Shown here piece after piece: positions 48,326-63,323 of a stretch of 64,000 nucleotides of DNA. Position numbers and translations under genes: made by a program. Under the pieces are notes generated by a model. It ran no database searches. It saw nothing but the letters and a program-made list of their open reading frames with translations, and was not told the DNA's origin. How positions within the stretch are numbered: the first letter of the stretch is position 1; each line of letters starts with the position of its first letter. The DNA lies in the IMG/VR virus record IMGVR_UViG_3300046543_000266, positions 124,001 through 188,000 of that record, one strand, 5' to 3'.

Positions 48326-48349
48326 GATGCACCTCTTAAGATGGGTGGT

Positions 48350-48823: not shown

Positions 48824-48856
48824 GAGGGAACCTCGTTGGGTTGGTTGTGGAGATGA

Positions 48857-49309
48857 TCAGTTGGCGGCTGCGGTTTCCGGCGACGCGAGCAGCAGTGCGC
48901 GCTCAGCGATCATGCGTTGCTTGGTGCGACGCTTCTCCAACAGCAGCGCGAAGTAGAAGATCGCGTCGAGAAGCGTTTCGTCCAGCGACTCGGTGGCATT
49001 CGCATCACCTTCAACGTTGAACACGTCGTAGTTCAGCAGTTCGCACTGCGTCTCGAGGCGGTCGATCTTGCGCCAGATCGTGAAGAAGGCACCCGGTCCC
49101 ACACGCTTGCACCACGACGCGCCGTACTCGCTGTCCTTCTTGATGCCGAGGTCGACCAGTTCGTTCATCATCTGGCGGATGTTCTCGAAGTTGGTATGCG
49201 GCAGGTCACGGTCTTGAATCAGCGAGTTGGGGAAAAAGGACACGCCGAAGTCCGGATGCAGCATCGACTGTTGTTTGGGTTGTTGGGGTTGTTTGGGTTG
49301 GTTGCTCAT
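48857..49309 (-). CDS. Nmad1/DUF1599-like all-alpha nucleotide pyrophosphatase
   Basis: KKDSEYGASW.....G.FFTIWRKIDRL...ESLDETLLDAIFY. Confidence 0.7.
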   Translation of the reverse strand: MSNQPKQPQQPKQQSMLHPDFGVSFFPNSLIQDRDLPHTNFENIRQMMNELVDLGIKKDSEYGASWCKRVGPGAFFTIWRKIDRLETQCELLNYDVFNVEGDANATESLDETLLDAIFYFALLLEKRRTKQRMIAERALLLASPETAAAN

Positions 49310-49506
49310 GTTGGTTCCTTGGGTTGGAAGCGGTTCAATACTACGGCGGTTCCGTCAGCGCTAATACGTTGCCACACTAGCGCTTTCTCTTCGACGCTGA
49401 GGAATACCCAATTGTCTACTTCGAATTGGGTACGACCGCAGCCTTTGCATTTGGCGTCGAAGAGCGTGGAACACACGCCGATACATGGGGTGTCGAGTCC
49501 GTGCAT
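49306..49506 (-). CDS. DUF1289-family small Cys-rich (predicted Fe-S) protein
   Basis: TPCIGVCST...KCKGCGRTQFEVDNW...S.EEK..VWQRI; TAATG-coupled start at 49506. Confidence 0.8.
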   Translation of the reverse strand: MHGLDTPCIGVCSTLFDAKCKGCGRTQFEVDNWVFLSVEEKALVWQRISADGTAVVLNRFQPKEPT

Positions 49507-50606
49507 TACTTCATCCGGCGGCCGAGCCACATGATACCGGCGGTCAGCCAGTCGTTGCCGAGCTTGGTGTCGAGGTCAAGCTGGAGGCACTGCTTGTTGT
49601 ACGTGAGCAGAGCCAGACCGCTCGCCGTGTCGCCGGCCTTGTGCATGTTGTAAGCCCGAGCCATCGGCATTGCCACGTAGTCCAGGAACTGGTTCTCGTA
49701 GTCACGGGGGTTCACCTGCTCGGTACACACCGTGACGAAGTCGCGCAGTTCGTCTTCGAATTCATCGCTGTCAGCTTGCAGCGGCAGCGGTGCCACGTCT
49801 TCGTCATACCGACCTGGATAGGCCAGACCACCCTCGACCCCACGGAAGCCGTTGCCCGCGCGCTCGATGAACCGCTTTGTTACGTCGAACTCCGTGTAGA
49901 TGTGCAGGTTGTTGGACACCTGATAGTAGTTGCCAACTTCGACGCCGATCTTGTTCGCCAGATATTCATGGAGGAACGCGAAGTGAACGGCGTTGGCGCC
50001 GTAGGCACCCCAGATCATGTCGTTGCTACGGTTCGTCACCGTGATATTGAGCTTGCCCTGACAGATGTCGACGTAGACCGCGGTATTGCACGGCAGGTCC
50101 TTCGACGTCTGGTTCAGCAGATCCGACGGCTTATACTCGTTGTACATGCCGATGCCGCTTTCGTGCTCGACATCTTCGCCCTTGCCGTCCCACATGCTGA
50201 TCACACAGCGACGGCTGCCCGGATTCTTGCGCAGTTCGGCGATCACGGCGTCCAGCTGATCGTAGCCGAAGTGGTTGCGCCAGCGGAAGCCATACGCGCC
50301 GTTGAGCGTCTCACCGTCGTCGGTGTACTGGAGCATCTGCTTGGCATAGTAGCCGATGGTCGCCACGTCGTTGTTGCCATTCAGCATCCACATGCTTTCG
50401 ATCAGGTGGAGGAACGGGTTGGCGTCGCGAGCCTTGCTGAACGACACACGGTGCATCGGGCTCGACCACATGGTCGTCACCGGACGGGGGAAGCGCAGGA
50501 CCGGACCGTTGCGGCTGTCGGTGACAACACCGTTGGCGAGGATCTGGGGGATGCCAATGCTGAGGGCATGGTCCGGGTTAGCTGCATGAATCACAAACAT
50601 GAACAA
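49506..50606 (-). CDS. Thymidylate-synthase-fold enzyme, probable dUMP hydroxymethylase
   Basis: SRNG, GAYGFRWR, SRRCVISMWD, catalytic DLPCN, NRSNDMIWGAYGANAVHF (Asn at the dUMP-specificity position), NNLHIY. Confidence 0.8.
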   Translation of the reverse strand: MFMFVIHAANPDHALSIGIPQILANGVVTDSRNGPVLRFPRPVTTMWSSPMHRVSFSKARDANPFLHLIESMWMLNGNNDVATIGYYAKQMLQYTDDGETLNGAYGFRWRNHFGYDQLDAVIAELRKNPGSRRCVISMWDGKGEDVEHESGIGMYNEYKPSDLLNQTSKDLPCNTAVYVDICQGKLNITVTNRSNDMIWGAYGANAVHFAFLHEYLANKIGVEVGNYYQVSNNLHIYTEFDVTKRFIERAGNGFRGVEGGLAYPGRYDEDVAPLPLQADSDEFEDELRDFVTVCTEQVNPRDYENQFLDYVAMPMARAYNMHKAGDTASGLALLTYNKQCLQLDLDTKLGNDWLTAGIMWLGRRMK

Positions 50607-50671
50607 CTCCTATGAGAAGGGTTTGATTGGTTGCATACACCAGCTTATTTACGCGCTGGCTTAGAGTTGGA

Positions 50672-51676
50672 TTAGGAGCCTTTGTAGCCGCTGCGAGGCT
50701 CGCCTTCACCGCTGATGACGCGGCAGTATTTGTCGTACTCGCACAGACAGTTGCTGAGGTTCGCTGCGCTCAGGTCGACGAAGCCCGTCTCGAAGCTACC
50801 GGACCACCACTTCGGAGGCACGATCGTCTTCGCCAACTTGTTCATGTCGCGGCGCAGCTTGACCATCGGCTCGTTGAGAGCATTGCCGCGGACGTCGGCT
50901 TTACGACCGCCGCTCATCACTCGGTTCATACCCCGCGTAGTGCCCGGTCCAGGACTAGTGAACGTCTCGATGTCCGTGGCATTCATCAGCCACTTCTGGC
51001 TGTACGTCAGGTCGACGATAACCTGATATGCCATGAACGGTCCCCAACCTTGATACTCACGAAGGGTGGATACGGCCTCTTCCTGGGACTCCTTGAACTT
51101 ACTGCGCAATTCCTTGCGATCCTTCCACAGCGGATCCAGCCCAAAGTACGGGATGTAGTAAGCCTTGCTGTTGTCCGGCGGGTTCGTGCCCTTCGGGAAC
51201 ACGCTGTTGACGATGTAGGCACCGGTGATCAGCTTCTGCTTCTCGTTCTTGATAGCGTTGAACGTGGCGTAGGCTTTCTTGGCACTCCAGCCGTCGACTG
51301 GGAAGCTACCTTCGTCCATCATGCGTTGCAGCGTATCCGGCCAGTTGATGATACGAGCCAGCGCCAGCATGAACCACAGGTCCGGATGGTTCTGGTACGG
51401 CGTGATGATGTTGTCGATTATCCACTTGCTGACCGTGTCGAGCTCACGGTAGATGTTGCAGAAGCGGTAAGCGCGCAGCACTGGATCGTTGGTCCACGGC
51501 TTGGCCTTGCCTACGTGATAGCGCTTCAGGTAGATAGAGTGGCGCTCGATCCAGAACTTCGTGATCGACTCTACCTTGTTTTGATCTTCGGGCTGGAACA
51601 GATAGGGCAGCTTCTTCGGAGCCGCCGCTGGCTGATCAAACAGACTGCCTTGACTGGCGTTTGTTTTGCGCTTCAT
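50672..51676 (-). CDS. aGPT-Pplase1 / 5-hmdU DNA kinase helical-domain family protein
   Basis: ERHSIYLKR...PWTNDPVLRAYRFCNIYRELD, GWGPFMAYQVIVDLTY, GPGTTRG, NCLCEYDKY.R. Start moved to ATG 51676. Confidence 0.8.
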   Translation of the reverse strand: MKRKTNASQGSLFDQPAAAPKKLPYLFQPEDQNKVESITKFWIERHSIYLKRYHVGKAKPWTNDPVLRAYRFCNIYRELDTVSKWIIDNIITPYQNHPDLWFMLALARIINWPDTLQRMMDEGSFPVDGWSAKKAYATFNAIKNEKQKLITGAYIVNSVFPKGTNPPDNSKAYYIPYFGLDPLWKDRKELRSKFKESQEEAVSTLREYQGWGPFMAYQVIVDLTYSQKWLMNATDIETFTSPGPGTTRGMNRVMSGGRKADVRGNALNEPMVKLRRDMNKLAKTIVPPKWWSGSFETGFVDLSAANLSNCLCEYDKYCRVISGEGEPRSGYKGS

Positions 51677-51981
51677 TTGAATAAGCCTCGTGTTCTTTGA
51701 TTGGCAATCGTTGCCAGATACGTACCGTGACAGCGCTTGGGATTGCACCAACATCCGAGACGCTGTCCTTTTAAATCACGGCGGATCTCGTCTCGGGTTG
51801 GTGGCGTTTCTCCGTTAGGTGCTTCGAGCAATCCGTCTAGCCACTTCATGTGCTTGTCGCAGCATTCGGTACGCGTGCCGTGAACGCCGACCACAAAGGG
51901 ATTGCCGTACTTCTGAGGCCTCCCGATGTAGACGTCGTATTCGGATCGCTCGCAGTGGACAACCAACGGATGGTTCGTCAT
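51673..51981 (-). CDS. DUF4326 protein
   Basis: YDVYIGRP..YGNPF...LKGQRLGCWCNPKRCHG; start at ATG 51981. Confidence 0.85.
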   Translation of the reverse strand: MTNHPLVVHCERSEYDVYIGRPQKYGNPFVVGVHGTRTECCDKHMKWLDGLLEAPNGETPPTRDEIRRDLKGQRLGCWCNPKRCHGTYLATIANQRTRGLFK

Positions 51982-52772
51982 AGCAGGAAGTGTTCGGCTT
52001 CGATTGCACGAGTGCGCCAGTACATGCACTGGTCACCGAGCGACATGTTGCGAATGTCGTCTTCGGAATAGTACCCGAGCACCTTGCGCGCCAGCGTGTC
52101 CACGGTATGTGCGTGGGTTGTACCCCTATTTACGCTGCCGACCATTTCGTAGCCGAAGAGCTTGAAATCGCGCTCGTACAGACGGTTGATCAGGCCCAGA
52201 ACATCTTCGTCCAGTTCTTCGATTTTCAGCTTCGGACCAGTCGGATACTTCGTCTGATCCTTCGAGTGGCCGAACTCTTCGGTTTCCACGCCGATCATTT
52301 CACGCACCGTTTTCCAGTCGGCATCAAGGCGCTCGTAGCGGCCGATGAAGTCAGCGTAGCACTTGTTGCCTTGATAGAAGAAGTAATGCTGCGGGCAGAA
52401 GTGCGTGTACTTCCAGTCGAAGCGCACACTTACTTCGTTCAGATTGCGGCGCGCGAATTCGTTGAAGTCGGCATCGGCCGGCAGATTGTGTTGGCGCTTG
52501 TGCTCGGCCCACGAACTGATGAGACGAGTGTACGGATCACGCACGAAGCCGAACTTGAAGTACTCCTCGAAGTAGTGATGGGGCCACACTGCCGGGATGT
52601 CGGCAACGCACACGTGGAACACTTCGATCACACGTTCGAGCTTGGGAATGAACGACTGGTAGTCCAGCTTCAGCGGGTTGCTGTCATACTGGAAGAGGGT
52701 GCGGCGAATCGACGTTCCTGCAACCTTTGGGTTGTGCAAAAACATGAACTTGTTTTGGTCACTGATGATCAT
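51978..52772 (-). CDS. PAPS-dependent sulfotransferase (Sulfotransfer_2 family)
   Basis: 5'-PSB loop FLHNPKVAGTS, 3'-PB motif FVRDPYTRLISSW, HFCPQ, DFIGRYERL. Confidence 0.85.
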   Translation of the reverse strand: MIISDQNKFMFLHNPKVAGTSIRRTLFQYDSNPLKLDYQSFIPKLERVIEVFHVCVADIPAVWPHHYFEEYFKFGFVRDPYTRLISSWAEHKRQHNLPADADFNEFARRNLNEVSVRFDWKYTHFCPQHYFFYQGNKCYADFIGRYERLDADWKTVREMIGVETEEFGHSKDQTKYPTGPKLKIEELDEDVLGLINRLYERDFKLFGYEMVGSVNRGTTHAHTVDTLARKVLGYYSEDDIRNMSLGDQCMYWRTRAIEAEHFLL

Positions 52773-53682
52773 TGAGCAGTCTCTTGAGGTATTCGCGGTC
52801 TTTGTTTTGAAACGCCAGTTCGGCCTTCAGTAGTAATTTACCCTTCTCGCGGAACTTGGCGCGCTTTTCTTTGTCTTTGAACAGGCCCGGTGCGTTCATG
52901 AAGTCGACGCGCAGGAAGGACGCAACGTGCTGAGCTTGCTTGCCGCGCTTGATCAAACCTGGGAACATCACCATCTGGCGCAGGAACGAGTCGTGGACAT
53001 GCTGGACCTTGCGCTCGCTGCCTGCACCACCTTGATCTTTCGGGTCGAAGGTGGTGTTCCACAGCATGTGATAGTCGACGACCGAACGATAGCCGTTGCA
53101 CAGCACCGCCAGATTGTGAACTGTGTCGATGCCCCACAGATCGCGCGTTTCCTTCTTGTCGATGCAGTGCAGCAGGATGTTCACATCGTAGCCCGCGACG
53201 TTGGTACACTTGTGATTCTTGCGCTCCAGTCCCCAACGTTCGATGATGTTCTTGTGCATGAAGTAAGCGCCAGCGCCGACCAGCGCGTTACCCTTGCGGA
53301 ACAGTTGCGGAGCCCTCTTCAGGAACCACTCGTCCGCAGCGCTGATGTCTTTGGTTGCGCCCACGTACTTGTCACCACGACGACCGTAGAACAGCATGTC
53401 GTCCTCTATCACCATTGCGAACTTGGCCCCCTGCTTGCGATGATGATCGAACACCGAGTAGCGCTTGTTCGGCAGCAGGATGTCGTCCTTGGTGCGCAAG
53501 AAGTCCACGTGCTTGGCGTAGGCTTCCTTCTTGTGGGCCGCATGCTCTGAGGCCGGGCACACCACTGTGATGTGCTTCTGCACTTCAGGGGACAGGTAGG
53601 ACAGCGTCTTCTGCCGTCCTACTCGCCCCTTGGTCAGCAGGTAGATGTGGTAGTCTTTATCCATATGATACGTAGGTTCCAA
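52759..53682 (-). CDS. TAGT/JGT-like GT-A glycosyltransferase, paralog A (divergent)
   Basis: IYLLTKGR, KR..V, AMVIEDDM metal-binding motif, C-terminal QGG; the usual ED motif reads GID. Confidence 0.6.
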   Translation of the reverse strand: MEPTYHMDKDYHIYLLTKGRVGRQKTLSYLSPEVQKHITVVCPASEHAAHKKEAYAKHVDFLRTKDDILLPNKRYSVFDHHRKQGAKFAMVIEDDMLFYGRRGDKYVGATKDISAADEWFLKRAPQLFRKGNALVGAGAYFMHKNIIERWGLERKNHKCTNVAGYDVNILLHCIDKKETRDLWGIDTVHNLAVLCNGYRSVVDYHMLWNTTFDPKDQGGAGSERKVQHVHDSFLRQMVMFPGLIKRGKQAQHVASFLRVDFMNAPGLFKDKEKRAKFREKGKLLLKAELAFQNKDREYLKRLLNDHQ

Positions 53683-54175
53683 CCCACCCTTTATGGTGTT
53701 CTTTTATACCGCCGCAGACGGCCTTCATGCAAGAGTAGTCTAGACCGTGAATGCGGCATAGACCCCTGAGATTGTTTCCAATGTAGCTCACCCAACGTGG
53801 AGAAGTCACGTGGTAGCCGCGCGCCAGCTTGTTGCCAATCTCCACATCACCGCCGTTGAGGGCGCGCTCCGACAAGTTCTGAGCGGTTGTGATGAACCGG
53901 CAGTTACCCCAGACGTAATCACCGACGTCACCGAGGCGACCCATCTGGAATTCGGATACTGCCTTTCCGATCTGATCGGGGTGTTTTATACCGGCACGTT
54001 TCGCGAGCTTCATGTACTGGCGGAAGGTCAGCAAACAGACGCAACCACGACGACTAGCATTTCCGCGTAGATCGCGCCATTTCCTTCGCCATTGAAACCA
54101 GTAGCTCTGATCGAAGCTGAGCTTCTGCAGCACACCACAAGCTTCCTCTTCAGTTAGAACACGATCCCGAGTCAT
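53657..54175 (-). CDS. HNH-like (beta-beta-alpha-Me) free-standing endonuclease
   Basis: NASRRG...LLTF, MGRLGDVGDYVWGNCRFITTAQN; C-terminal NUMOD-like HHKGW. Confidence 0.55.
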   Translation of the reverse strand: MTRDRVLTEEEACGVLQKLSFDQSYWFQWRRKWRDLRGNASRRGCVCLLTFRQYMKLAKRAGIKHPDQIGKAVSEFQMGRLGDVGDYVWGNCRFITTAQNLSERALNGGDVEIGNKLARGYHVTSPRWVSYIGNNLRGLCRIHGLDYSCMKAVCGGIKEHHKGWVGTYVSYG

Positions 54176-54942
54176 TAGACCAGCCCTCCGATTTTAGCAG
54201 CACCCCTCCAACTGATGCGAGTGTTGGAATCCGGGTGTTGGGCCGATGGCGGCTTTTCCTTCACGACATCGGGGTGCAGCTTGAGCAGCTTCTGCAGCGC
54301 AGCCTTCGCCATATCACGGGTACGTTCACCTTCTAGCCCACCTGGAGCGTCGGCCTTACGCTGCGCCACCGCCATGTCGTACGTGAGGGCGATTCGCGTT
54401 CCACCCTTGAGTAGTTGGAGCGTGTAGTCTATGTCCTCGTACGGAAATAAACGATCCCACACGATCTTCTTTACGGTGCCGCGGGACATGCCGAAGGCGA
54501 ATCCTAGATGGCTGTTCTCTTTGATACCACCCTTCGGCGCGAAAGCCTTGGTCCCGAGCCCGACGCACTTGTAGCGCGAGCACAGGTCCGGAAGCACCTT
54601 GGTCCAGAAGCCCTTGGTCACTTCGGGAACCGTCGACGCCACGACGTGCTTGTCCTGCTCCTTATCGAAGGCATACAGGTACAGATCGTCGTCGAACATG
54701 AACGCGTACTTGTGCGGGCTGTTCTCCATGATCCACTGGCGCTTGGCACTCAGCGTCTGGATGGACTTCGGCTGCGCCAGCACGTTGACCTTCGGGTAGT
54801 TGGCCTTGAGGATAACGACTTCATCCTTGGGGCATACCAGAGTGACGTGACCGTGCATTCCCTTAGGCAACCGCTCGACCGTCAGCTGGTTGGCAGTACG
54901 GCCCCGCGTTGGGATGTAGATATGATAGTTGATCTTGGACAT
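54175..54942 (-). CDS. TAGT/JGT-like GT-A glycosyltransferase, paralog B
   Basis: IYIPTRGR, LSAKRQWI, FMFDDDL, YEDIDYTLQLL..G, PGG. Confidence 0.75.
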   Translation of the reverse strand: MSKINYHIYIPTRGRTANQLTVERLPKGMHGHVTLVCPKDEVVILKANYPKVNVLAQPKSIQTLSAKRQWIMENSPHKYAFMFDDDLYLYAFDKEQDKHVVASTVPEVTKGFWTKVLPDLCSRYKCVGLGTKAFAPKGGIKENSHLGFAFGMSRGTVKKIVWDRLFPYEDIDYTLQLLKGGTRIALTYDMAVAQRKADAPGGLEGERTRDMAKAALQKLLKLHPDVVKEKPPSAQHPDSNTRISWRGAAKIGGLV

Positions 54943-55676
54943 CAGAAGCGAGCCTCGTTTCTGCGTTGGAATTCCGCCAGATGCTCAGGCGTACCCAGAT
55001 TGGTGAACTGACGGGTCTCGAAGTACCGCAGCGGCAGTCGTGTGATCCCGTTGATGACGGCGCTCAGTGGCAGTTCGGCATAAGGCTTTCTGTTGCGCTC
55101 GGCTTCAAGGAACGCATCCGCCATGTCGTCCACGTTACGGAACCAGTAGCAGCCAGTGTTGATGTAGTCGGAGATCCGCAGCTTCTCGGACAGACCATGG
55201 AACACGGCAGTCTTACGCCACGCCGAATGATACTTGGCTGGATTGTTCAGGAAAGAGTACTCTTCCGACCCGCTCTTGTCTTCGTAGGCAATGACGCCGG
55301 AGCTGCCCTCGATGACTGCTTCGGTCATGGTGTACTTGAGGTCGACGTGTGCCGAGCAGTCACAGTCGAAGATGATGACCGGTCCTTCACGCGGTGGATC
55401 GCACATCAACGCCAGAGCCATCGCGCTGAATGCCGGACCCGGCGAAACGTCTTCGAGATAGTGGACGGCCTTGAAGGTATCCCCGTACTGTGCGAGCAGC
55501 TCCTCGTCCTTGCGCAGGATCAGGATCTCGACGTCCGACGGTTCCAGCCCATACGAGTCGATAACCCATCGGTACATCGGGACGCCCGGAAGTACTTCGA
55601 TGAACGGCTTGCTGACCGGGAATCCCTGCTCCCGGAAGCGTGAGCCCATTCCGGCGGCGGACATTAGATAGCGCAT
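54942..55676 (-). CDS. Sugar-phosphate nucleotidyltransferase (NTP_transferase fold)
   Basis: SAAGMGSRF...GFPVSKPFIEV, IFDCD, SEKLRISDYINTGCYWF, LGTPE. Confidence 0.8.
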   Translation of the reverse strand: MRYLMSAAGMGSRFREQGFPVSKPFIEVLPGVPMYRWVIDSYGLEPSDVEILILRKDEELLAQYGDTFKAVHYLEDVSPGPAFSAMALALMCDPPREGPVIIFDCDCSAHVDLKYTMTEAVIEGSSGVIAYEDKSGSEEYSFLNNPAKYHSAWRKTAVFHGLSEKLRISDYINTGCYWFRNVDDMADAFLEAERNRKPYAELPLSAVINGITRLPLRYFETRQFTNLGTPEHLAEFQRRNEARF

Positions 55677-57202
55677 GATTGCTGTTCCATGAGTTGGTAT
55701 ATTTCTTGGCCCTTCTTGAACAGAGCCAGTTGTCGTTGCAGCGAATCGCTGTGTAGCGGCAGCATTGAGAAGAACAGCAGCGCAGTCATCGCCAGCACTT
55801 CTTGGAAGTCGATACCGAAGCGCTCCCGAACTACGACGCTGAAGTAACTAATGACCTCACGGTTCAGCGGAGGCGGGTTGATTGCCGAGACACTGTAGTG
55901 CCCGGCGATAATCGAGTCGTAGCCAACCATCGAGTGCAGCAGCTTTGCCAACTCGTAGCGGACGTCGCCGTATATGGAGCGCTCGTCGAATCCGTTGAGG
56001 CCGCGCGGGTCAAACACCTTGATGCTATTAGTGCGATGGTCATACGCGATGTTGCTGAAGCACAGGTCACCATGAACTACCGAGATACGGTCAGGGCGAT
56101 CGGGTATCTGTGCGATGCAGTGCTCGGACAATGCCGTAAGCTCAGGCACAATCTCCGAGAAGGTGTCGGACTGGCCGCTGGACTGACCACTGAGTTGTAG
56201 CTGCTGGATGCGCTGGCGAGTCTTACCTTCGATGAGCTCACGGAACGCCGCCGCTTCATGCAGGACGGTCTCTGAGTCGATATGGTGTCCCGGGTCACCA
56301 CCAATGAAGTCGAGGCACTTGTCGATGATGGTGTGCCACACACCAAACTCTTGATTGCCGAACACGTACAGTTCAGCCAGCGTCGGCAGCGGCAGGTACT
56401 CGATCTCGTAGGATCCGTAGCAGTCGTACGACAGCAGGGCCGGAGTGTACTTACGCAGCTTGACTGGGAGGTTGCTGTACCAATCGAACTCAGCGTGGAT
56501 CTTGGCTGGAGTACCACTCTTACTCACCACGTTGTCTTCGATGCGAAGTTGGTTGAAATGCCGCGACGTCAGGAAGTTCTGCTTGGACAGGAAGTAGGTA
56601 GCAGCGTGTCCGAAGTCAAACCAGTCGACGCCGTCCGTATAGTCCTGATAGGTTACGGCGACTTCGTCGTGAATCCAATCCAGGGCTTCACTGATATCGT
56701 CGTCAGGTGCTATCACACGCGCTACCGTGTTGAGCGGAGCCATGAAGTATCCGATGAACACAGCATTGCGGCCGTTATCCAAGCGTATATCCAACCAGTT
56801 GAAGTTACCCGGACGGGTCGCAGCCACCCCGATGCACGGAGTGGTCGCCCACTTGCTGATCAGTGTATCGCCCCACAGAACGTGTAGTTCCACACCCTCA
56901 CAGTTTCGAGCACCGTTCAAGTGGTTCACTATCCTGGTCACCGCATAGTACAGAACGTGCGACAACGGACGTGGGTGCTTGGACGAGTACTCACTTAACA
57001 TGGTCACGCGATCATCGCACGGCGGCATCGGGAAATCTTCCGGATGTGTGACAAATACCTTGTCGAAGTCTGCACCCATCTTCAGCTGATGTTGGATCAA
57101 CGACTTGCCAGCTACCGGAATGCGTGAGGCGGGCAGCTTACCGAACATGAACTGAAGCTCGGGGTTGCACAGCGCTGAAGACAGGATAAGCAGGACCTTC
57201 AT
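55664..57202 (-). CDS. Nucleotidyltransferase-like / APH-choline-kinase-like phosphotransferase fusion (sugar kinase candidate)
   Basis: FGKLP..RIPVAGK, WFDFGH..TY, VVHGDLCFSNI, FDPRG, GDVRYELAKL.HS. Same architecture as so-called capsular biosynthesis proteins. Start at ATG 57202. Confidence 0.75.
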   Translation of the reverse strand: MKVLLILSSALCNPELQFMFGKLPASRIPVAGKSLIQHQLKMGADFDKVFVTHPEDFPMPPCDDRVTMLSEYSSKHPRPLSHVLYYAVTRIVNHLNGARNCEGVELHVLWGDTLISKWATTPCIGVAATRPGNFNWLDIRLDNGRNAVFIGYFMAPLNTVARVIAPDDDISEALDWIHDEVAVTYQDYTDGVDWFDFGHAATYFLSKQNFLTSRHFNQLRIEDNVVSKSGTPAKIHAEFDWYSNLPVKLRKYTPALLSYDCYGSYEIEYLPLPTLAELYVFGNQEFGVWHTIIDKCLDFIGGDPGHHIDSETVLHEAAAFRELIEGKTRQRIQQLQLSGQSSGQSDTFSEIVPELTALSEHCIAQIPDRPDRISVVHGDLCFSNIAYDHRTNSIKVFDPRGLNGFDERSIYGDVRYELAKLLHSMVGYDSIIAGHYSVSAINPPPLNREVISYFSVVVRERFGIDFQEVLAMTALLFFSMLPLHSDSLQRQLALFKKGQEIYQLMEQQSCAI

Positions 57203-57237
57203 TATGACCTCGGATTGTTGTGGGCGTACTACCCTAT

Positions 57238-58116
57238 TTACTTCTGGCTGGCAGCATAGCATTTCTGCCAGTAGATGATGACTTCCTTGCGGGAGATGCT
57301 CTCTTTGTACTTACGGTCCACCACCTTGACGAACGGCTCGTGCGCACGCGCCAGCTTGACCGCAGCGATGTCCGAGCGCTTGATCGTCCGCTCTTCGAAT
57401 GCCCCACCCTTTGCCCCGTAGGACAGCGGGTTGACTACGAAGTTGTTCATGATTAGATTGGGGATGCCGCGCTTGAGCAGATGCAAGGTCACGTTGAAGT
57501 CTTCGCGGAACTTGATCTCGTCGAAGCGGATGTCGTTGTCGAGTAGCGTGCGGCGGTGATGACCCATCGCGTGCATGGCGCGACCGGCTTCCATGGTTTC
57601 CTTGCGCTGCCGATTGTTGTTCTGCCGTGAAGCAATGCAGGTATGCCGATACTCACGTTCGAGCATGGCATCACGGATGAAGTCGAAGCGGCGGATCTTC
57701 TGCTCGTCGGTGAAGCCGTCCTTGAACAGGAACAGCACACCCTTCTTCTTGTACTCAGGCAGCACATCCCACTGCACCTTCTTGGGGTCGAAGGCTCGAT
57801 ACTTCTTGTTGCAGCGCCGGAAGAAGTACATGTCGTCGTCCATCTGGAAGATGTTGTCCGACTTGACGTTCTCGATGATCCACTGGCGCTTCTTGGCGAT
57901 GCCGTCCACCGTCGGATCGTCGATAGCGTACACCAGATCGTGTTTATACTTCTTCTTTAAGGCCCGCGCATCTTCGAGGGTCGAAGTAATGAGCAGTACC
58001 TTGGCACGCAGTTCTTCGGGGATGCCCAAGAACGTCACTTGGCGATCCACCCGTTGATGCGTTGGTATGACCAGCTGAAAGTCTTTATCAGCCACGAGGA
58101 GTCTGTTCTTGAACAT
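57238..58116 (-). CDS. TAGT/JGT-like GT-A glycosyltransferase, paralog C
   Basis: VIPTHQR, GIAKKRQWI, FQMDDDM, FREDFNVTLHLL..G, KGG. Confidence 0.75.
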   Translation of the reverse strand: MFKNRLLVADKDFQLVIPTHQRVDRQVTFLGIPEELRAKVLLITSTLEDARALKKKYKHDLVYAIDDPTVDGIAKKRQWIIENVKSDNIFQMDDDMYFFRRCNKKYRAFDPKKVQWDVLPEYKKKGVLFLFKDGFTDEQKIRRFDFIRDAMLEREYRHTCIASRQNNNRQRKETMEAGRAMHAMGHHRRTLLDNDIRFDEIKFREDFNVTLHLLKRGIPNLIMNNFVVNPLSYGAKGGAFEERTIKRSDIAAVKLARAHEPFVKVVDRKYKESISRKEVIIYWQKCYAASQK

Positions 58117-58127
58117 GCCCGAGCCTG

Positions 58128-58832
58128 TTAGTAGGTGAGAACGAACTTGCGGAATCCGTCAGGTGTGTTCTCGATGGAAGGGTAGCCAGTGGCCTCGACG
58201 TTGTACTTGGTGACGCCGTGCTCGACCGTGGTGGCGGGAACCATCAGACCACGCAGTTCGAAGTCGTCGAACAGATACTCTTCCATCGTGGCTGCGTTGA
58301 TAACGCGCCACTGATTGGTGTGGCCGTCCGAATGCGTGTTGTACCGGATGTAGTACTTCTTGTGACCGGTCGTCACCACCTTGGCGATCTGACGTGCTTC
58401 CTTGTCGAACTCTTCGGCGCTCTCCAGATAGTTGCCGATCTGATAGTCCACCTCATCGTACTTGGGCGGCACGTACATCTTGTTCGTGTCCTCGAAGCGG
58501 CCCTTGTCGATGGTGTTCATCCACACCTTGAACACGTCGTCTGTGTGATCGAGGAACTGTTCTTGGAACGCGTTGCGCGTGGTTGCCAGCGGACACACGA
58601 AGTCGACGATAACCCAATGGCCTTGGAAGTGCAGCATCCGAGCCAACTGACCGAGAGTGGTTGCTTGCTTGACGCGGTCCAGGTTGGAGAAGCCCAGATG
58701 CGACGTGATGGTGCTACGCGCCCAGTCAGCGTTGACGTGGATGGCGTTCAGCTTCTGTTGGAGAACCTTTGCCAACGTGGTCTTGCCGCTGCCGGGCAAA
58801 CCCTGAATGAAGATGACTTTGTTTTGGCTCAT
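58128..58832 (-). CDS. Adenylylsulfate (APS) kinase-like P-loop kinase
   Basis: QGLPGSGKTTLA, NAD.AR, LGFS..DR..Q, VIVDFVCP...R, GRFEDTN; C-terminal extension of unknown fold. Confidence 0.7.
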   Translation of the reverse strand: MSQNKVIFIQGLPGSGKTTLAKVLQQKLNAIHVNADWARSTITSHLGFSNLDRVKQATTLGQLARMLHFQGHWVIVDFVCPLATTRNAFQEQFLDHTDDVFKVWMNTIDKGRFEDTNKMYVPPKYDEVDYQIGNYLESAEEFDKEARQIAKVVTTGHKKYYIRYNTHSDGHTNQWRVINAATMEEYLFDDFELRGLMVPATTVEHGVTKYNVEATGYPSIENTPDGFRKFVLTY

Positions 58833-58887
58833 GATGGTTTGTTGTGTGTAGAGAGGGAAGAGCAGTAAAACTAGGAAGAGCGATTTT

Positions 58888-59280
58888 TCAGGCGGTGCGA
58901 GCCGAGGCTTGGTACGGCTTCATGCGCGTGTGGTGGACGATGATGTACTGCGACCGGCCGCCACGCGACATGTGATCAGCGTTGACCCATTGCCGTTCGC
59001 GCGGAAGGAACGCATCGGTGAACACGTAAATGTTGCTGTCGATACGGCACAGGAACCCTTCTGCCTTCTGAGCCGCAGTTGCCAGCAACGTCCGGTCCTG
59101 GATCTCCTCGTAGTTACGGCCGAGATGCTCGTACGTCGAGGGGTCCACGATGACGTGGGTGGTGAGCCGCGGATCGATGGTCACCAAGAAGTCCGGGATG
59201 GTCGTGAACTCCTGACGGGCCAGACCCATCGGGAAGTCCTTGTTCTTGTACACCTGGACAGGCTTGATCGGATTAGTCAC
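58888..59280 (-). CDS. Hypothetical protein
   Basis: SD GGAG plus GTG at 59280; the track ORF is 5'-overextended. Confidence 0.55.
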   Translation of the reverse strand: MTNPIKPVQVYKNKDFPMGLARQEFTTIPDFLVTIDPRLTTHVIVDPSTYEHLGRNYEEIQDRTLLATAAQKAEGFLCRIDSNIYVFTDAFLPRERQWVNADHMSRGGRSQYIIVHHTRMKPYQASARTA

Positions 59281-59413
59281 GAGTGTTCTCCAGTGCTTTA
59301 CGGCGACGCATTGCACGCACGTCATGAGCAACCTGACGTAACGTGTGAATGATGACTGCTAATGCCACGACGCCGAGCGCCAACATTATAGCGGATTGCA
59401 GCCGGGGTTCCAT
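59273..59413 (-). CDS. 46-aa single-pass membrane protein, absent from the ORF track
   Basis: SD GAAGGA; MEPRLQSAIMLALGVVALAVIIHTLRQVAHDVRAMRRRKALENTRD. Confidence 0.55.
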   Translation of the reverse strand: MEPRLQSAIMLALGVVALAVIIHTLRQVAHDVRAMRRRKALENTRD

Positions 59414-59437
59414 AGTGAAGATCCTTCAAATTGACTA

Positions 59438-59590
59438 TTACAGATTGGCCTTCTCTTTCGGGTCGCAGCACGTTGCTTCGATTGGGATAACGAAGCAGCA
59501 CCACCAACAGCGTTTGGTATCCGGACCAACTACAAACGGGAAGGGGTGCGGCGACGGCGGTTCGGTGTTCTCCCCCACGTCGTTTTCCAT
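59438..59590 (-). CDS. 50-aa Cys-rich protein, absent from the ORF track
   Basis: ATG 1 nt after the upstream stop; contains CWWCC-x8-CC. Confidence 0.45.
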   Translation of the reverse strand: MENDVGENTEPPSPHPFPFVVGPDTKRCWWCCFVIPIEATCCDPKEKANL

Positions 59591-59591
59591 G

Positions 59592-59876
59592 TTAGCGGCG
59601 ACCCTTCGTATTGAACTTGGCCTGTTGCCGCTGCTGGAAACGCTTCTGGTCTTGACGCTGGATCTTCAGTTCGTGACGCTTGTTCGCTTCGTCGTGGTTG
59701 AAGTCGGATGCAGGTGCCTGACACGGCGTATCGTCATAGTCATGTAGCTCGCGACGTTTACGCTGTTCGATGCTCGGTGTGCTCTCGTGAACGGCGCCCT
59801 GACTGGCGAGCATAGCCATTGCTGCGACTGCCGAAATGCTGGAGCGACCACCAAGTCCAATGCGACGCTGTGTCAT
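59592..59876 (-). CDS. Small basic hypothetical protein
   Basis: ATGA-coupled; ends KGRR. Confidence 0.6.
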   Translation of the reverse strand: MTQRRIGLGGRSSISAVAAMAMLASQGAVHESTPSIEQRKRRELHDYDDTPCQAPASDFNHDEANKRHELKIQRQDQKRFQQRQQAKFNTKGRR

Positions 59877-60064
59877 TTGCGACGTCTCCCTGTTCTAGCG
59901 CGGCGCTGTGCCTTGCGTTTGTGGTGTAGCTTGCGTAGCGCCCGGACGCGGTTGACTTCATACGCCATAAGACGTAGCTGTGAGTCAGTCAGAATACGAT
60001 AGTCAACCGCCCCCGGAACCTCGACCCATGTGAACTTCAATGGTTGTGGAAAGTAGAGGCCCAT
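59873..60064 (-). CDS. 63-aa Arg-rich protein
   Basis: TGATG-coupled start at 60064; ends KRKAQRRARTGRRRK. Confidence 0.6.
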   Translation of the reverse strand: MGLYFPQPLKFTWVEVPGAVDYRILTDSQLRLMAYEVNRVRALRKLHHKRKAQRRARTGRRRK

Positions 60065-60240
60065 CAACGCCTTCCGGTGCGTGCGCGCTTCTGGCGCTTG
60101 CGCTTGTTGAGCTTGAGTCTGTGTTGGCGATACAAAGCCCACAGAGTACCGAAGATCCGCCGGTTCTCAATTTCCTCGATCTGGTTAGCAAACTCTACGG
60201 CCAGTGGATCATCCAAATCGTTCATTGTCAAAGTAGGCAT
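60064..60240 (-). CDS. 58-aa Arg-rich protein, absent from the ORF track
   Basis: TGATG-coupled at both ends; ends KRKRQKRARTGRR. Confidence 0.6.
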   Translation of the reverse strand: MPTLTMNDLDDPLAVEFANQIEEIENRRIFGTLWALYRQHRLKLNKRKRQKRARTGRR

Positions 60241-61259
60241 CAACGTTTCTCCGAATTGGCCTTCGCATACGAGAACGTCTTGTCCACCAGCGACTCGACG
60301 TTCTTGGGCAGTTGCTTGCCGACCAACCGGAAGGCGATGGCCTCGGCGATCAGTTCGTTGACGTGCTTGGTGGCATACTCGGTGACGATGGGTTCAAGGT
60401 CACGCTTGGATACACCACGCGTAGGCCACAGCGCCCGGATGTCGTCCTTGAAGTCAGCCTCGAACAGCAGGTCCAGTTCCTTCACCGACAGGGAGTGGCG
60501 CTGGCTGATACTGCGCAGTATCCACTTGTAGGTGATGGTGTCCTCTTCCGACAGGATGGACCGGAAGTCTGACGGCATGTCTTCTTGACTCAGCAGCATG
60601 TCCAGCAGCTCCTGGGACTTGTCGCGCTTGATGTCCTCGACCTTGATGCTGGTATTGTACGCCCGGATCCACGCGGCATTGAGCTTCTTGCCGGTAGCGT
60701 ATTCCTTGTGGAGGTGATGGCCGAGCTCGTGGTAGATCACGTACGGATACTCCGAGAACGGCATGATCTCCGGGCGGATCTGGAACGTATGCGGCCGCAC
60801 TTCGGGCTTCTTACTGCGCTTGTAGAGGCCCGCGTACTTCTCGCCGTTGAACGGGATGACTTCCCACACGCAGGTGGAGGGGTCGATGATGAAGTCGAGG
60901 CCGTGTTGCTTCAGCACCTTGGCACACTTGTCGAACGCCGCGAACAGCTTCTTGCCGAGTTCAGCTTCGGGCTTGTAGAAGAAGTGGATGGTGCCGAAGT
61001 TGTCGTGTACCTTGCGGCCCGTATGCAGGATCGACGTATCGCAGCCGTACACCTTACCCGGAACCGGCGTCGGCCCCAGATTGACGACGATGTCCTTTGT
61101 GGACACTTCGACTGTGGACCGCAGGTTCGCGAAGTGGCAGTCCTTCTCTACTACACCAGTCACTTGATTGTTGGTCTTGCCAGTGACCTTGAACAGGAAG
61201 AGCTTGGCCTTCGTGTTGTTGGATTGGGTTCGTCCTACAGCGTAATCGCCTTTCTGCAT
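60240..61259 (-). CDS. Zinc metallopeptidase (HExxH)
   Basis: VIYHELGHHLH with distal YATKHVNELIAE; start moved to ATG 61259. Confidence 0.65.
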   Translation of the reverse strand: MQKGDYAVGRTQSNNTKAKLFLFKVTGKTNNQVTGVVEKDCHFANLRSTVEVSTKDIVVNLGPTPVPGKVYGCDTSILHTGRKVHDNFGTIHFFYKPEAELGKKLFAAFDKCAKVLKQHGLDFIIDPSTCVWEVIPFNGEKYAGLYKRSKKPEVRPHTFQIRPEIMPFSEYPYVIYHELGHHLHKEYATGKKLNAAWIRAYNTSIKVEDIKRDKSQELLDMLLSQEDMPSDFRSILSEEDTITYKWILRSISQRHSLSVKELDLLFEADFKDDIRALWPTRGVSKRDLEPIVTEYATKHVNELIAEAIAFRLVGKQLPKNVESLVDKTFSYAKANSEKR

Positions 61260-61300
61260 GGTGCCTTCCTGTTCGTGGATAGAGATATGGTCTGGAAACG

Positions 61301-61335
61301 AAAAATGCCCGACCCTGAGTAACAAGGCCGGGCAT
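61301..61335 (-). terminator. Intrinsic terminator
   Basis: ATGCCCGGCC...GGTCGGGCAT followed by TTTT on the - strand. Confidence 0.7.
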
Positions 61336-61354
61336 CCGTTACTGTACAGCTTAT

Positions 61355-62437
61355 TTACTGCGGATCGGCAGGTTGCACCGGGGCGACCACAACGGGTTCA
61401 GCCGGAGCCGGCGTCACAGTCAGCGTGACTGCGGGTTGCTCGGCGGGCACTTGCTGGATGGCTTCTTCGAACACAGCAGCCGGAGTAGGCGATGCCGTAA
61501 CCTCTTGCGCGTTGAGGTCGGGCGGCAAGCCAGCGCTCGTGGTGGTGACCGAGCCGTCTTCGTGCTGCACGCTGGCGACGTCTTGATGTTCAGACACGTC
61601 CGACTCTTCGACGCGGAAGTCCGACTCGTCAGTGCTCGGGTTGTCTTCGGTGCCGACCAAGACGCTGGCGTACAGGCCGTTGGTGCTGAACTCCGGGTAC
61701 ACACCGATGAAGTGCGTCCAGTACACGAGATCCGTGCCGAGCTTGGTGCGAACTTCGAAGGCGTCGACCGTGGAGTTGGTTTCCGACGGGGCGAATGCTG
61801 TGCGCAGGTTGTCGATCGTGACCTTTTCCGACAGTTCGAACAGCAGACGGTGTTGCGTGAGGTTGAACGTGCCGTTCGGATCTTGGCTGTACACCACCAG
61901 AGAATCCGTGAGTTCGCGCGCCGACAGCGGCGAATCGACCAGACCTTCTTCGACTGCGAATGCGAAGCCGACGTGCACGCCGTCGTTGCTGTTGCTGGCT
62001 GCGACAACCGGCTCGTTGTCACCGGAGAGCTCCGCCATGAGCTGTTCTGCGAGCGTGCCTTCGTTTGCGCTTTGCGGAACTTCGTCCGTGACCAGCAGAT
62101 CGACAGCGGCTTGCTCGACGGCTTCGGAGGCTTCTGCCGTTTCGGCTTCGTCGTCCGACGCGTAATCCGCCTCGTTGAATACGAACAGATTGTTGAGCTT
62201 GAGTTCGAGTTCGCCGTCGACGTTGTAGAACTTGTACATTTCGAGGAAACCGTCGATGTCGCGGTTGTACACCTTGCCGTCGTTGTCCGCGTACACGACT
62301 TGCGGCGGATGTTGCAACTGCGTCTTGGCTTTCAGCGCAGTGTTCGTGATGAACAGGAACTTCGCGGTGCGCCCGTCTTTGCGCATCCACACAGAACCGG
62401 GCGACAGGAATTCGAGTTGGGAAGCAGGAGTTGCCAT
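61355..62437 (-). CDS. Acidic hypothetical protein
   Basis: Strong host-like codon bias; N-terminal PGSVW.RKDG..A.FLFITN SH3-like segment and low-complexity linkers. Confidence 0.65.
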   Translation of the reverse strand: MATPASQLEFLSPGSVWMRKDGRTAKFLFITNTALKAKTQLQHPPQVVYADNDGKVYNRDIDGFLEMYKFYNVDGELELKLNNLFVFNEADYASDDEAETAEASEAVEQAAVDLLVTDEVPQSANEGTLAEQLMAELSGDNEPVVAASNSNDGVHVGFAFAVEEGLVDSPLSARELTDSLVVYSQDPNGTFNLTQHRLLFELSEKVTIDNLRTAFAPSETNSTVDAFEVRTKLGTDLVYWTHFIGVYPEFSTNGLYASVLVGTEDNPSTDESDFRVEESDVSEHQDVASVQHEDGSVTTTSAGLPPDLNAQEVTASPTPAAVFEEAIQQVPAEQPAVTLTVTPAPAEPVVVAPVQPADPQ

Positions 62438-63312: not shown

Positions 63313-63323
63313 GGTCTAACCTC

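Follow-up and report, generated by a model that had tools for sequence, protein, structure and literature searches.

A putative DNA-sugar sulfation cassette in a jumbo phage related to Ralstonia phage RSL1

An intact sulfotransferase and a divergent APS-kinase homologue were identified in a jumbo phage related to Ralstonia phage RSL1, inside its gene cluster for decorating thymine-derived DNA bases with sugars. The best explanation, held at about even confidence, is that the two enzymes together put sulfate on the DNA-linked sugar, a kind of DNA modification of which no report was found. The sequence analysed (the window) was a stretch of 64,000 nucleotides, positions 124,001 to 188,000 of IMG/VR record IMGVR_UViG_3300046543_000266. 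[quoted passage not shown]

Gene content of the cassette

The genes of the run and its flank, all on the minus strand, were as follows.

58128..58832 (-), two-domain kinase of 234 aa heading the run; N-domain (about residues 1-155) with a predicted APS-kinase fold and a new, predicted all-beta C-domain (about residues 158-234) without a Pfam match; proposed to perform the PAPS synthase step (APS + ATP to PAPS).
57238..58116 (-), TAGT-family glycosyltransferase, a divergent paralogue and likely chain-extending sugar transferase (Pfam TAGT E 2.4e-11; PHROG 842 E 6e-48).
55664..57262 (-), 532-aa proposed bifunctional sugar-activation protein, a probable sugar-1-kinase plus NDP-sugar pyrophosphorylase, with the true start probably at the ATG at 57202 (PHROG 24015 E 3e-96; no PDB sequence hit). 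The N-terminal half is called NDP-sugar pyrophosphorylase-like only on the name of the RSL1 orthologue, and the C-terminal half is weakly APH/fructosamine-kinase-like (weak Pfam APH and Fructosamin_kin hits over residues 350-444).
54942..55676 (-), 244-aa nucleotidyltransferase-like protein, a putative sugar-1-phosphate nucleotidylyltransferase (PHROG 3980 E 1e-16; weak PDB matches to mannose-1-P guanylyltransferase and an NDP-sugar pyrophosphorylase; the RSL1 ORF235 orthologue is annotated 'nucleotidyl transferase').
54175..54942 (-), canonical TAGT glycosyltransferase, the likely base-proximal (initiating) DNA glycosyltransferase (Pfam TAGT E 8.4e-38 over the full length), and the paralogue best matched by the single TAGT of the GLF-type cassettes.
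53657..54175 (-), HNH-like ORF inserted between two TAGT genes (PHROG 2081 HNH endonuclease E 1.5e-7), without counterpart in RSL1 or the other cassettes; probably a homing endonuclease and not part of the pathway.
52759..53682 (-), TAGT-family glycosyltransferase, a divergent paralogue (Pfam TAGT E 2.7e-10; PHROG 842 E 2.6e-41).
51978..52772 (-), PAPS-dependent sulfotransferase (Sulfotransfer_2) of 264 aa, apparently soluble, with a phage-specific C-terminal tail of about 55 aa.
51673..52029 (-), DUF4326 protein (Pfam E 1e-21), also present in one related cassette (locus L094).
50672..51754 (-), 5-HMUDK homologue (Pfam HMUDK_hel E 3.8e-48), which marks the DNA base being modified as 5-hydroxymethyl-dU; the role of the family is described in PMC5889632.
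49506..50606 (-), TS-family enzyme (Pfam Thymidylat_synt E 1.3e-21), the candidate dUMP hydroxymethylase supplying 5-hmdU; 5-HMUDK co-associates with dUMP hydroxymethyltransferase in hypermodifying phages (PMC5889632).
48350..48823 (-), HAD phosphatase of the PNKP type (Pfam HAD_PNKP E 7e-12), which recurs beside both kinds of modification cassette (hmU and 7-deazaguanine); the same family was seen in three related loci (L006, L187 and L189).

The sulfotransferase contained both PAPS-binding motifs, PKVAGTS (residues 15-21) and RDPYTRLISSW (residues 78-88), and matched Pfam Sulfotransfer_2 over the whole domain (E 6.2e-24, 85.9 bits against a cut-off of 22) and PHROG 3347 (E 2.8e-47). In an alignment of 29 homologues, K16, G19, H53, R78 and P80 were invariant and S86 nearly so, these being the 5'-PSB lysine, a candidate catalytic His, and the 3'-PB Arg and Ser. 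The start of this ORF overlapped the stop of the upstream TAGT gene (52759-53682) by 14 nt. Its closest cellular relatives (38-47% identity over about 80% of the protein), from Pantoea, Burkholderia and Vibrio, were all located in ABC-transporter O-antigen clusters with GLF and glycosyltransferases, so a sugar acceptor is likely.

The kinase matched Pfam APS_kinase (E 3.9e-15, 56.6 bits against a cut-off of 21.1) over residues 4-120 only. The top 20 of its 21 PDB sequence hits were APS kinases, and APS kinases dominated the fold hits of its AF2 model (pLDDT 91; 4rfv TM 0.83), although gluconate kinase and a sugar kinase also appeared among the top fold hits. N34-A35-D36, R39, F48 and R53 were invariant in the family, and D36, R39, F48 and R53 aligned with M. 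tuberculosis CysC Asp480 (proposed catalytic base), Arg483 and Arg497 (phosphosulfate binding) and Phe492 (which stacks on the APS adenine). However, the kinase deviates from the APS-kinase signature, with VNAD in place of LDGD (the Mg-water Asp is Asn) and no alignable counterpart of the lid residues Lys562, Arg559 and Phe576. It scored 52 bits, far below the NCBIfam cut-offs (138.7 for TIGR00455, and 127-244 for the stand-alone kinase models).

A regex scan of all six frames, which is a crude test, revealed no signature motifs of ATP sulfurylase, CysD, CysN, CysQ or CysH in the window. No sulfurylase was found in about 96% of the RSL1 genome either, so reliance on host APS is reasonable. The observation underlying the original prediction, that a sulfotransferase with intact PAPS-binding motifs and an APS-kinase-like gene bracket the glycosylation genes without an ATP sulfurylase in the window, was thus confirmed in all coordinates and motifs.

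Conservation of the cassette and related systems

The arrangement is not chance, since it recurred in RSL1 and in at least seven other phage lineages at 35-74% protein identity and with different gene orders. In Ralstonia phage phiRSL1, ORF230-ORF238 (NC_010811 / AB366653) showed the same cassette in the same gene order, TS-family gene, 5-HMUDK homologue, sulfotransferase, TAGT, TAGT, nucleotidyltransferase, pyrophosphorylase-like gene, TAGT and 'adenosine 5'-phosphosulfate kinase', with the HNH-like ORF and the DUF4326 gene being extra in the window. Nucleotide identity was 72.8% over the aligned parts, and protein identity was 58-60% for the kinase and sulfotransferase. Both genes already carry these names in the GenBank and RefSeq records of RSL1, of which the original prediction was not aware, but the RSL1 genes are named only by similarity, and no study of the chemistry of RSL1-type DNA was found in the literature.

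All 12 distinct loci examined that carry a full-length kinase had a sulfotransferase or sulfotransferase-fold gene on the same strand within 0-5.5 kb. Nine of them were hmU cassettes with TAGT, most also with HMUDK and a TS-family gene, in at least three gene orders, and several phage cassettes read kinase-GLF-sulfotransferase. The other three were 7-deazaguanine DNA-modification clusters, in which the kinase lay between QueD and QueC-type genes and the adjacent gene encoded an unrelated protein with an N-terminal QRTGSK loop, whose AF2 model (pLDDT 95) had Stf0 sulfotransferase as its only significant PDB fold match (E 2e-4, TM 0.44-0.49). Among 80 loci of distant relatives of the kinase (about 50% identical N-domain, actinophage-like contigs), 14 also had a Sulfotransfer_2-like gene 1-3.5 kb upstream, while 66 had no recognisable sulfotransferase within 10 kb; restricted to loci with adequate upstream sequence, 41 of 52 lacked one. 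In the opposite direction, 71 of 78 viral Sulfotransfer_2 loci lacked the kinase within 10 kb.

Other known systems share parts of this design. In the 5-HMUDK-dependent thymidine hypermodification of phages ViI, M6, PhiW-14 and SP10 (PMC5889632, PMC8989533), a TS-family hydroxymethylase and a 5-hmdU DNA kinase are likewise present, with post-replicative elaboration of 5-hmdU in DNA, but those phages share a DNA-glycosylase-like aGPT-Pplase and add amino-acid- or polyamine-derived groups. No aGPT-Pplase was seen in the annotated genes from 48050 to 63965, where three TAGT glycosyltransferases, sugar-activation genes, a sulfotransferase and an APS-kinase homologue were found instead. T-even phage hmC glucosylation and the TET-associated glycosyltransferase (TAGT) family also use GT-A-type enzymes to glycosylate a hydroxymethyl-pyrimidine in DNA, with successive transferases building a di- or oligosaccharide, and PHROG 842 is named after the beta-glucosyl-HMC alpha-glucosyltransferase. 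Here the base is hmU rather than hmC, as implied by 5-HMUDK and the TS-family gene, there is no TET/JBP dioxygenase, and predicted dedicated NDP-sugar synthesis and a proposed sulfation arm are added.

The oligosaccharide/phosphate thymidine hypermodifications of SP-15, YerA41 and Carin-5 (PMC12686479) are thymidine derivatives carrying several sugars and an anionic group, with gene blocks of nucleotide-sugar enzymes and glycosyltransferases; those carry a pentyl-type linker and phosphate, no sulfotransferase or APS kinase is described for them, and the gene families differ. In bacteria, an APS-kinase gene is co-located with a carbohydrate sulfotransferase and glycan-building genes in rhizobial NodPQ/NodH and in the Vibrio O-antigen locus (L195), where a canonical APS-kinase gene and a CysN-like GTPase gene adjoin the GLF/GT2/ABC-transporter cluster containing the sulfotransferase relative. 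The bacterial systems also encode the sulfurylase step and act on secreted or surface glycans, while the phage appears to encode only the proposed kinase step, in a divergent two-domain form, and its glycan is predicted to be on DNA. Compared with canonical CysC of M. tuberculosis (PDB 4BZP/4BZQ/4RFV; PMC4373884), the phage kinase shares the fold (as predicted), the P-loop, the catalytic Asp and the Arg/Arg/Phe APS-binding core, but it has NAD in place of DGD, a lid that is not conserved and an extra beta-domain of about 75 aa, and is only 25-26% identical in the fold alignment.

Proposed pathway and alternatives

Several other readings were considered. The sulfotransferase may be real while the kinase is not an APS kinase but phosphorylates another nucleotide-linked or DNA-linked substrate, for example the 3'-OH of a different NDP-X cofactor or an intermediate of the modification, with host PAPS feeding the sulfotransferase. 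This is unlikely but is the strongest of the alternatives, given the altered DGD motif, the lack of an alignable lid Lys or Phe, the extra C-domain, the low NCBIfam scores, the other kinases among the fold hits, the distant relatives without a nearby sulfotransferase and the 7-deazaguanine loci. In addition, Campylobacter Cj1415, an APS-kinase homologue, phosphorylates CDP-amidate rather than APS. On the other hand, the residues that grip the phosphosulfate and adenine of APS are invariant in the family, every full-length member examined has a sulfotransferase or Stf0-like neighbour, including those in the 7-deazaguanine loci, and a sulfotransferase with an intact 3'-phosphate-binding motif needs a 3'-phosphorylated donor.

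It is less likely that the glycosyltransferases and the sulfotransferase act on a non-DNA acceptor, such as a host envelope glycan or virion protein, and lie near the hmU genes only by synteny. The O-antigen-type relatives of the sulfotransferase would fit this, and on one related contig the sulfotransferase lay 20 kb from the kinase, with no glycosyltransferase among the ten neighbouring genes scanned. However, the three glycosyltransferases belong to TAGT, the family that PHROGs names after the phage hmC-glucose transferase, they are interleaved with 5-HMUDK and the TS-family gene in at least eight lineages despite reshuffling, no signal peptide or membrane anchor was noticed by eye in the sulfotransferase sequence, and the cassette sits in the replication module. 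Least likely, the sulfotransferase could sulfate the 5-hydroxymethyl group of hmU itself, giving either a leaving group, like the phosphate added by 5-HMUDK, or the final 5-sulfooxymethyl-dU. Sulfate esters of benzylic-type alcohols are good leaving groups, the cassette has no aGPT-Pplase and the chemistry downstream of 5-HMUDK is open, but the cassette already has a dedicated hmU kinase, and the sulfotransferase clade is nested among sugar-modifying O-antigen enzymes and travels with GLF in several phages.

The interpretation given in the original prediction, that host APS is diverted to PAPS to O-sulfate a DNA-linked sugar and that the added charge and bulk could defeat GmrSD, Type IV or CRISPR defences, was partly supported. 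Its PAPS supply-and-use reading is the best explanation, with an intact sulfotransferase of the carbohydrate type, a kinase homologous to APS kinase, and linkage of the two across phage lineages even where the sulfotransferase belongs to a different family. The anti-defence role is speculation, on which nothing in the sequence bears. What the analysis established was the domain identities, the intact PAPS-binding motifs, the conservation of the APS-contacting core residues, and the recurrent linkage of kinase, sulfotransferase, TAGT and HMUDK across phage lineages, while every substrate, including APS for the kinase, the order of steps, and DNA as the acceptor were inferred only. The DNA target rests on context alone, since TAGT and 5-HMUDK are DNA-base-modification families and the cassette lies between the primase and the TS/HAD genes of the replication module; with no aGPT-Pplase seen in the annotated genes from 48050 to 63965, the role of the 5-hmdU kinase beside glycosyltransferases is unexplained.

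In this view, the run 58832..49506 on the minus strand would be a thymidine-hypermodification cassette with a built-in sulfation arm. The TS-family enzyme would make 5-hm-dUMP, which is incorporated into phage DNA, while the 532-aa kinase/pyrophosphorylase-like protein and the 244-aa nucleotidyltransferase would make the NDP-sugar donor(s). The canonical TAGT (54175-54942) would then attach a first sugar at the hydroxymethyl group, possibly after or in competition with phosphorylation by 5-HMUDK, and the two divergent TAGTs would extend the chain. Finally, the phage kinase (58128-58832) would phosphorylate the 3'-OH of host-made APS to give PAPS, which would be used by the Sulfotransfer_2 enzyme (51978-52772) to O-sulfate the DNA-linked sugar, probably the terminal one.

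Gene content of the cassette and its relation to phage RSL1

The genes in question were located in a tightly packed minus-strand run from 58832 to about 48350, and scans against Pfam and PHROG gave the following assignments in transcription order.

Genes of the run, with the evidence for each

58128-58832 (-), P-loop kinase of 234 aa, APS_kinase E 3.9e-15 over residues 4-120 only
57238-58116 (-), TAGT glycosyltransferase, E 2.4e-11
55664-57262 (-), 532-aa protein with the C-terminal half weakly APH/fructosamine-kinase-like, PHROG 24015 E 3e-96
54942-55676 (-), 244-aa nucleotidyltransferase-like protein, PHROG 3980 E 1.2e-16
54175-54942 (-), canonical TAGT, E 8.4e-38
53657-54175 (-), HNH-like ORF, PHROG 2081 E 1.5e-7
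52759-53682 (-), third TAGT, E 2.7e-10
51978-52772 (-), sulfotransferase, Sulfotransfer_2 E 6.2e-24
51673-52029 (-), DUF4326 protein, E 9.9e-22
50672-51754 (-), 5-hmdU DNA kinase, HMUDK_hel E 3.8e-48
49506-50606 (-), thymidylate-synthase-family enzyme, Thymidylat_synt E 1.3e-21
49306-49530 (-), DUF1289 protein, E 4.3e-13
48857-49309 (-), 150-aa ORF, no Pfam match
48350-48823 (-), HAD_PNKP phosphatase, E 7.2e-12

The observation of the original prediction was confirmed, and the coordinates it had given, the two PAPS-binding motifs it had read in the sulfotransferase and the 14-nt overlap of the sulfotransferase start with the preceding TAGT gene were all correct. All genes of the cassette are intact and of orthologue-like length. 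A Toprim primase fragment (63324-63965) and an ORF without Pfam match (60240-61325) were found upstream, therefore the cassette sits in the replication and nucleotide-metabolism module. The promoter and terminator scan showed nothing informative inside the run, while the strongest terminator-like hairpin of the region (61303-61337, minus strand, 15 pairs followed by a T-run) lies just downstream of the 61355-62437 gene and may mark the start of the transcription unit that includes the cassette.

The three TAGT paralogues (PF20691) scored 130.8, 44.4 and 40.9 bits against a cut-off of 27.5. No TET/JBP dioxygenase, with which this family is associated, was hit among the cassette genes, and the hydroxymethyl base would be supplied instead by the thymidylate-synthase-family (TS-family) route. 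As in the 5-HMUDK thymidine hypermodification systems (Lee et al. 2018), the 5-hmdU DNA kinase is next to a TS-family gene, the candidate dUMP hydroxymethylase. However, the DNA-glycosylase-like aGPT-Pplase shared by all four characterised groups of those systems was not matched by any of the annotated genes from 48050 to 63965. The HNH-like ORF of 172 aa was inserted between two TAGT genes and had no counterpart in RSL1 or in the other cassettes examined, so it is probably a mobile homing endonuclease. The DUF4326 gene, wedged between the sulfotransferase and 5-HMUDK, recurred in one other hmU cassette (locus L094/L113).

The window belongs to the 217.6-kb IMG/VR contig IMGVR_UViG_3300046543_000266, and its only match in the phage collection at megablast sensitivity was Ralstonia jumbo phage phiRSL1, with 72.8% nucleotide identity. 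ORF230-ORF238 of RSL1 are the same cassette in the same order, and the records already name ORF232 as 'sulfotransferase-like / galactose-3-O-sulfotransferase' and ORF238 as 'adenosine 5'-phosphosulfate kinase', so the gene names are not new. No statement of what these genes do together, no chemistry of RSL1 DNA and no paper on sulfated phage DNA were found in the literature searched, although prior mention cannot be excluded in Iyer et al. 2013 (PMC3763556), which defined TAGT and 5-HMUDK and may discuss RSL1.

The sulfotransferase and the APS-kinase-like protein

The sulfotransferase matched Sulfotransfer_2 (PF03567) with 85.9 bits against a cut-off of 22, covering profile positions 4-252 of 252. 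The 5'-PSB loop (PKVAGTS) and the 3'-PB motif (RDPYTRLISS) were both present. In an alignment of 29 homologues down to 27% identity, K16 and G19 of the PKxxGTS loop, H53, R78 and P80 were invariant, and S86 of RDPxxRxxS was conserved in at least 90%, which is the expected picture for an active PAPS-dependent enzyme. Sequence searches of the PDB gave nothing useful for this protein (one spurious hit only), nor for the 532-aa and 244-aa proteins.

The closest cellular relatives were found in Pantoea dispersa (47% over about 80% of the protein), Burkholderia cenocepacia (40%) and a Vibrio (42%), and all three sit inside ABC-transporter-type O-antigen clusters with UDP-galactopyranose mutase (GLF) and several glycosyltransferases. 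The Vibrio cluster (L195) adjoins a canonical APS kinase gene and a CysN-like GTPase gene. Together with the glycosyltransferases flanking the phage gene, this supports a sugar acceptor, inferred from gene context alone, and gives a cellular precedent for co-locating PAPS supply with a glycan sulfotransferase. The bacterial relatives (loci L008/L009, L194 and L195) carry long C-terminal extensions that look coiled-coil, which, in clusters of this type, resembles chain-terminating enzymes of that pathway. Phage modules reading kinase-GLF-sulfotransferase may have been captured from such clusters.

For the kinase, twenty of 21 PDB sequence hits were APS kinases (best 2yvu at 3.8e-11, then M. tuberculosis CysC). 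The AF2 model was confident (pLDDT 91), its N-domain superposed best on APS kinases (4rfv, TM 0.83), and most of the top 50 fold hits were APS kinases, with gluconate kinase next. A P-loop GLPGSGKT was present at residues 11-18. The family-invariant residues were mapped through the CysC alignment onto the published CysC complexes (PMC4373884).

Residues of CysC, their roles and the aligned positions of the phage kinase

Asp480, proposed catalytic base: D36
Arg483 and Arg497, hold the phosphosulfate: R39 and R53
Phe492, stacks on the APS adenine: F48
Asp478, water-mediated Mg ligand: Asn
Lys562 (transition state), Arg559 (ATP adenine) and Phe576 (APS adenine), lid: no clear counterparts

R39, R53 and F48 were invariant in 21 family members. 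The LDGD motif, invariant in APS kinases (PF01583, TIGR00455), was not kept, since it becomes VNAD, with the family-invariant N34-A35-D36 retaining the catalytic Asp but changing the first Asp to Asn and Gly to Ala. The lid region has different invariants (T107, R112, F113, D115, T116 and N117), with no conserved Lys and no HFTG-type Phe, and judged by alignment alone R112 could substitute for Arg559. The protein scored 56.6 bits with the Pfam model (cut-off 21.1) and 52.2 bits with TIGR00455 (cut-off 138.7), and the NCBIfam CysC models gave about 52 bits against cut-offs of 127-244, all of them below cut-off.

The kinase domain is followed by a conserved all-beta domain of about 75 residues (58131-58385, minus strand, kinase residues about 150-234) with the motifs YIRYNT and WRVI, then EHxVxKxNV. 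It has no Pfam match and in BFVD resembled only small uncharacterised or DUF2061 phage proteins, and it might replace the missing APS-kinase lid. The protein is therefore a divergent member of the APS-kinase superfamily with an APS-like core binding site, and it is not a canonical CysC.

Signature-motif scans revealed no ATP sulfurylase (Sat or CysD/CysN), CysQ or CysH in the window, as the original prediction had stated for ATP sulfurylase, nor in the roughly 96% of the RSL1 genome that was read, and the annotation of RSL1 lists none either. The kinase was the only sulfate-activation gene found, so dependence on host APS is the simplest reading. Many beta-proteobacteria assimilate sulfate through APS reductase without needing PAPS, and if this applies to the host, the phage would need to bring its own kinase.

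Distribution of the kinase among phage loci

Scans of viral contigs with single proteins found only the window's own contig, and alignments were needed to reach relatives. The first scan with an alignment of the whole kinase returned only N-domain relatives from actinophage-like contigs, while a scan with the C-domain alone recovered the full-length clade. The full-length relatives (43-75% identity, both domains) fall into two contexts.

The first context, the hmU cassette, comprised the window, RSL1 and the loci L004, L006/L091, L094/L113, L095, L110/L111, L187 and L188. Each has the kinase, a Sulfotransfer_2 gene and TAGT, and most also have 5-HMUDK and a TS-family gene, in at least three different orders, with several reading kinase-GLF-sulfotransferase. 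The second context, found in three phage contigs (L092:9560-11079, L096:9536-11058 and L189:10001-11565), is a 7-deazaguanine (QueD/QueC/QueE/FolE) DNA-modification cluster, which reads QueD, kinase, an unannotated protein of 274-294 aa, a PRT-like gene, QueC, radical SAM and GTP cyclohydrolase I.

The unannotated protein immediately after the kinase starts with a QRTGSK loop and had no Pfam, PHROG or PDB sequence match. An hhalign comparison of its family with the Sulfotransfer_2 alignment also gave no significant match. Its AF2 model (pLDDT 95) had the Stf0 sulfotransferase as its only significant PDB fold matches (E 2e-4, TM 0.44-0.49), with the Teg12 and Teg14 sulfotransferases further down, and two of 28 family members hit Sulfotransfer_4 weakly. 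Only this fold comparison, the PSB-like loop and the weak Sulfotransfer_4 hits suggest a sulfotransferase, and in the three phage copies the usual 3'-PB Arg position is Pro. This gives a hint of a PAPS-dependent step on a deazaguanine base.

In all 12 distinct full-length loci, a sulfotransferase or sulfotransferase-fold gene lies on the same strand within 0-5.5 kb of the kinase, and the L092 contig carries a Sulfotransfer_2 gene as well, 20 kb away. This recurrence with two unrelated sulfotransferase types is the strongest argument that the kinase supplies the cofactor of the sulfotransferase, although it is guilt by association only. It was also considered that the kinase could be a backbone gene merely adjacent to interchangeable modification cassettes. 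This was rejected as the main reading, because the kinase changes position within cassettes (L004, L110) and always keeps a sulfotransferase-type neighbour.

The pairing is tight in the RSL1-type clade but not universal. The kinase family is very large, with 5,801 database hits and more than 460 viral loci, and the bulk are two-domain proteins of about 252 aa carrying the NADWAR motif from actinophage-like contigs (with WhiB, and with CHAP endolysin neighbours). They lie in variable islands with carbamoyltransferase, tryptophan halogenase, Asp/Arg hydroxylase, 2OG-Fe oxygenase and HSP20 genes. Only 14 of 80 such IMG/VR loci (L010-L089) have a Sulfotransfer_2-like gene nearby, or 11 of the 52 with at least 4 kb of upstream sequence. 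Conversely, 71 of 78 viral Sulfotransfer_2 loci have no such kinase within 10 kb. Some viral contigs (IMG/VR loci L118, L131 and L133) carry 6-8 tandem Sulfotransfer_2-like paralogues, and L118 also has a kinase homologue within 1.3 kb of one of them. Another phage contig (IMGVR_UViG_3300013296_000018, L112:983-6681) encodes a PrkA / DUF444 / SpoVR trio, the bacterial yeaG-yeaH-ycgB type stress module, about 2 kb upstream of its lone sulfotransferase gene.

Inferred pathway and its meaning

The gene assignments, the conserved motifs and the recurrent pairing come from the analysis itself, while the pathway, including the conversion of APS and ATP to PAPS by the kinase, is inferred throughout. 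In this view, 5-hm-dUMP would be made by the TS-family enzyme and incorporated into DNA, and NDP-sugars would be made by the 532-aa and 244-aa proteins. The canonical TAGT, which is the paralogue retained in the single-TAGT cassettes, would initiate on hmU, and the two divergent TAGTs would extend the chain. PAPS from the phage kinase would then be used by the sulfotransferase to sulfate the sugar, plausibly as a terminal cap. The role of 5-HMUDK beside glycosyltransferases is not explained by this pathway, because the aGPT-Pplase partner found in all characterised 5-HMUDK phages is not in the cassette, and a phosphate-bridged glycan, or a TAGT that displaces the (pyro)phosphate, are possibilities.

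The original prediction had proposed that host APS is diverted to PAPS in order to sulfate a DNA-linked sugar, which could defeat modification-dependent nucleases and CRISPR effectors, and this interpretation was supported in part. The PAPS supply-and-use arm is the best-supported explanation, but the full chain is only about as likely as not, with DNA as the acceptor being inferred from context and the anti-defence purpose being speculation. Among the rivals, a kinase with another substrate is unlikely but the strongest of them, a non-DNA acceptor is less likely still, and direct sulfation of hmU is very unlikely.

The further-reaching reading, that RSL1-type phages carry a sulfated oligosaccharide on 5-hydroxymethyluracil made with PAPS from a phage-specific two-domain APS kinase, is possible but rated somewhat below even. 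Since the same kinase also pairs with an unrelated Stf0-like (predicted) sulfotransferase inside 7-deazaguanine cassettes, PAPS-dependent tailoring would in this case be a recurrent add-on module of phage DNA hypermodification. The cassette belongs with the known thymidine-hypermodification and DNA-glycosylation systems, and it would be chemically unprecedented if the sulfate is really on DNA. Known phage DNA hypermodifications add sugars, amino acids, polyamines or phosphate, no description of sulfate in natural DNA was found in full-text searches, and to the best of present knowledge this would be the first sulfate ester found in natural DNA.

The analysis also defines a large phage family (about 5,800 database hits) of APS-kinase-like two-domain kinases that annotation pipelines name CysC-like, suggests where that name is probably right, and points to a second, unrecognised family with a predicted sulfotransferase fold inside 7-deazaguanine clusters. 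RSL1, which is a cultured phage, encodes glutathionylspermidine synthase and homospermidine synthase (NC_010811, ORF052, 24276-25397, and ORF110, 58761-60203), and as pure speculation phage-made polyamines could serve as counter-ions if the DNA carries extra negative charge from sulfate. A sulfated glycan would add fixed negative charge and bulk in the major groove, which would affect packaging, counter-ion demand, nuclease and CRISPR recognition, and sequencing behaviour.
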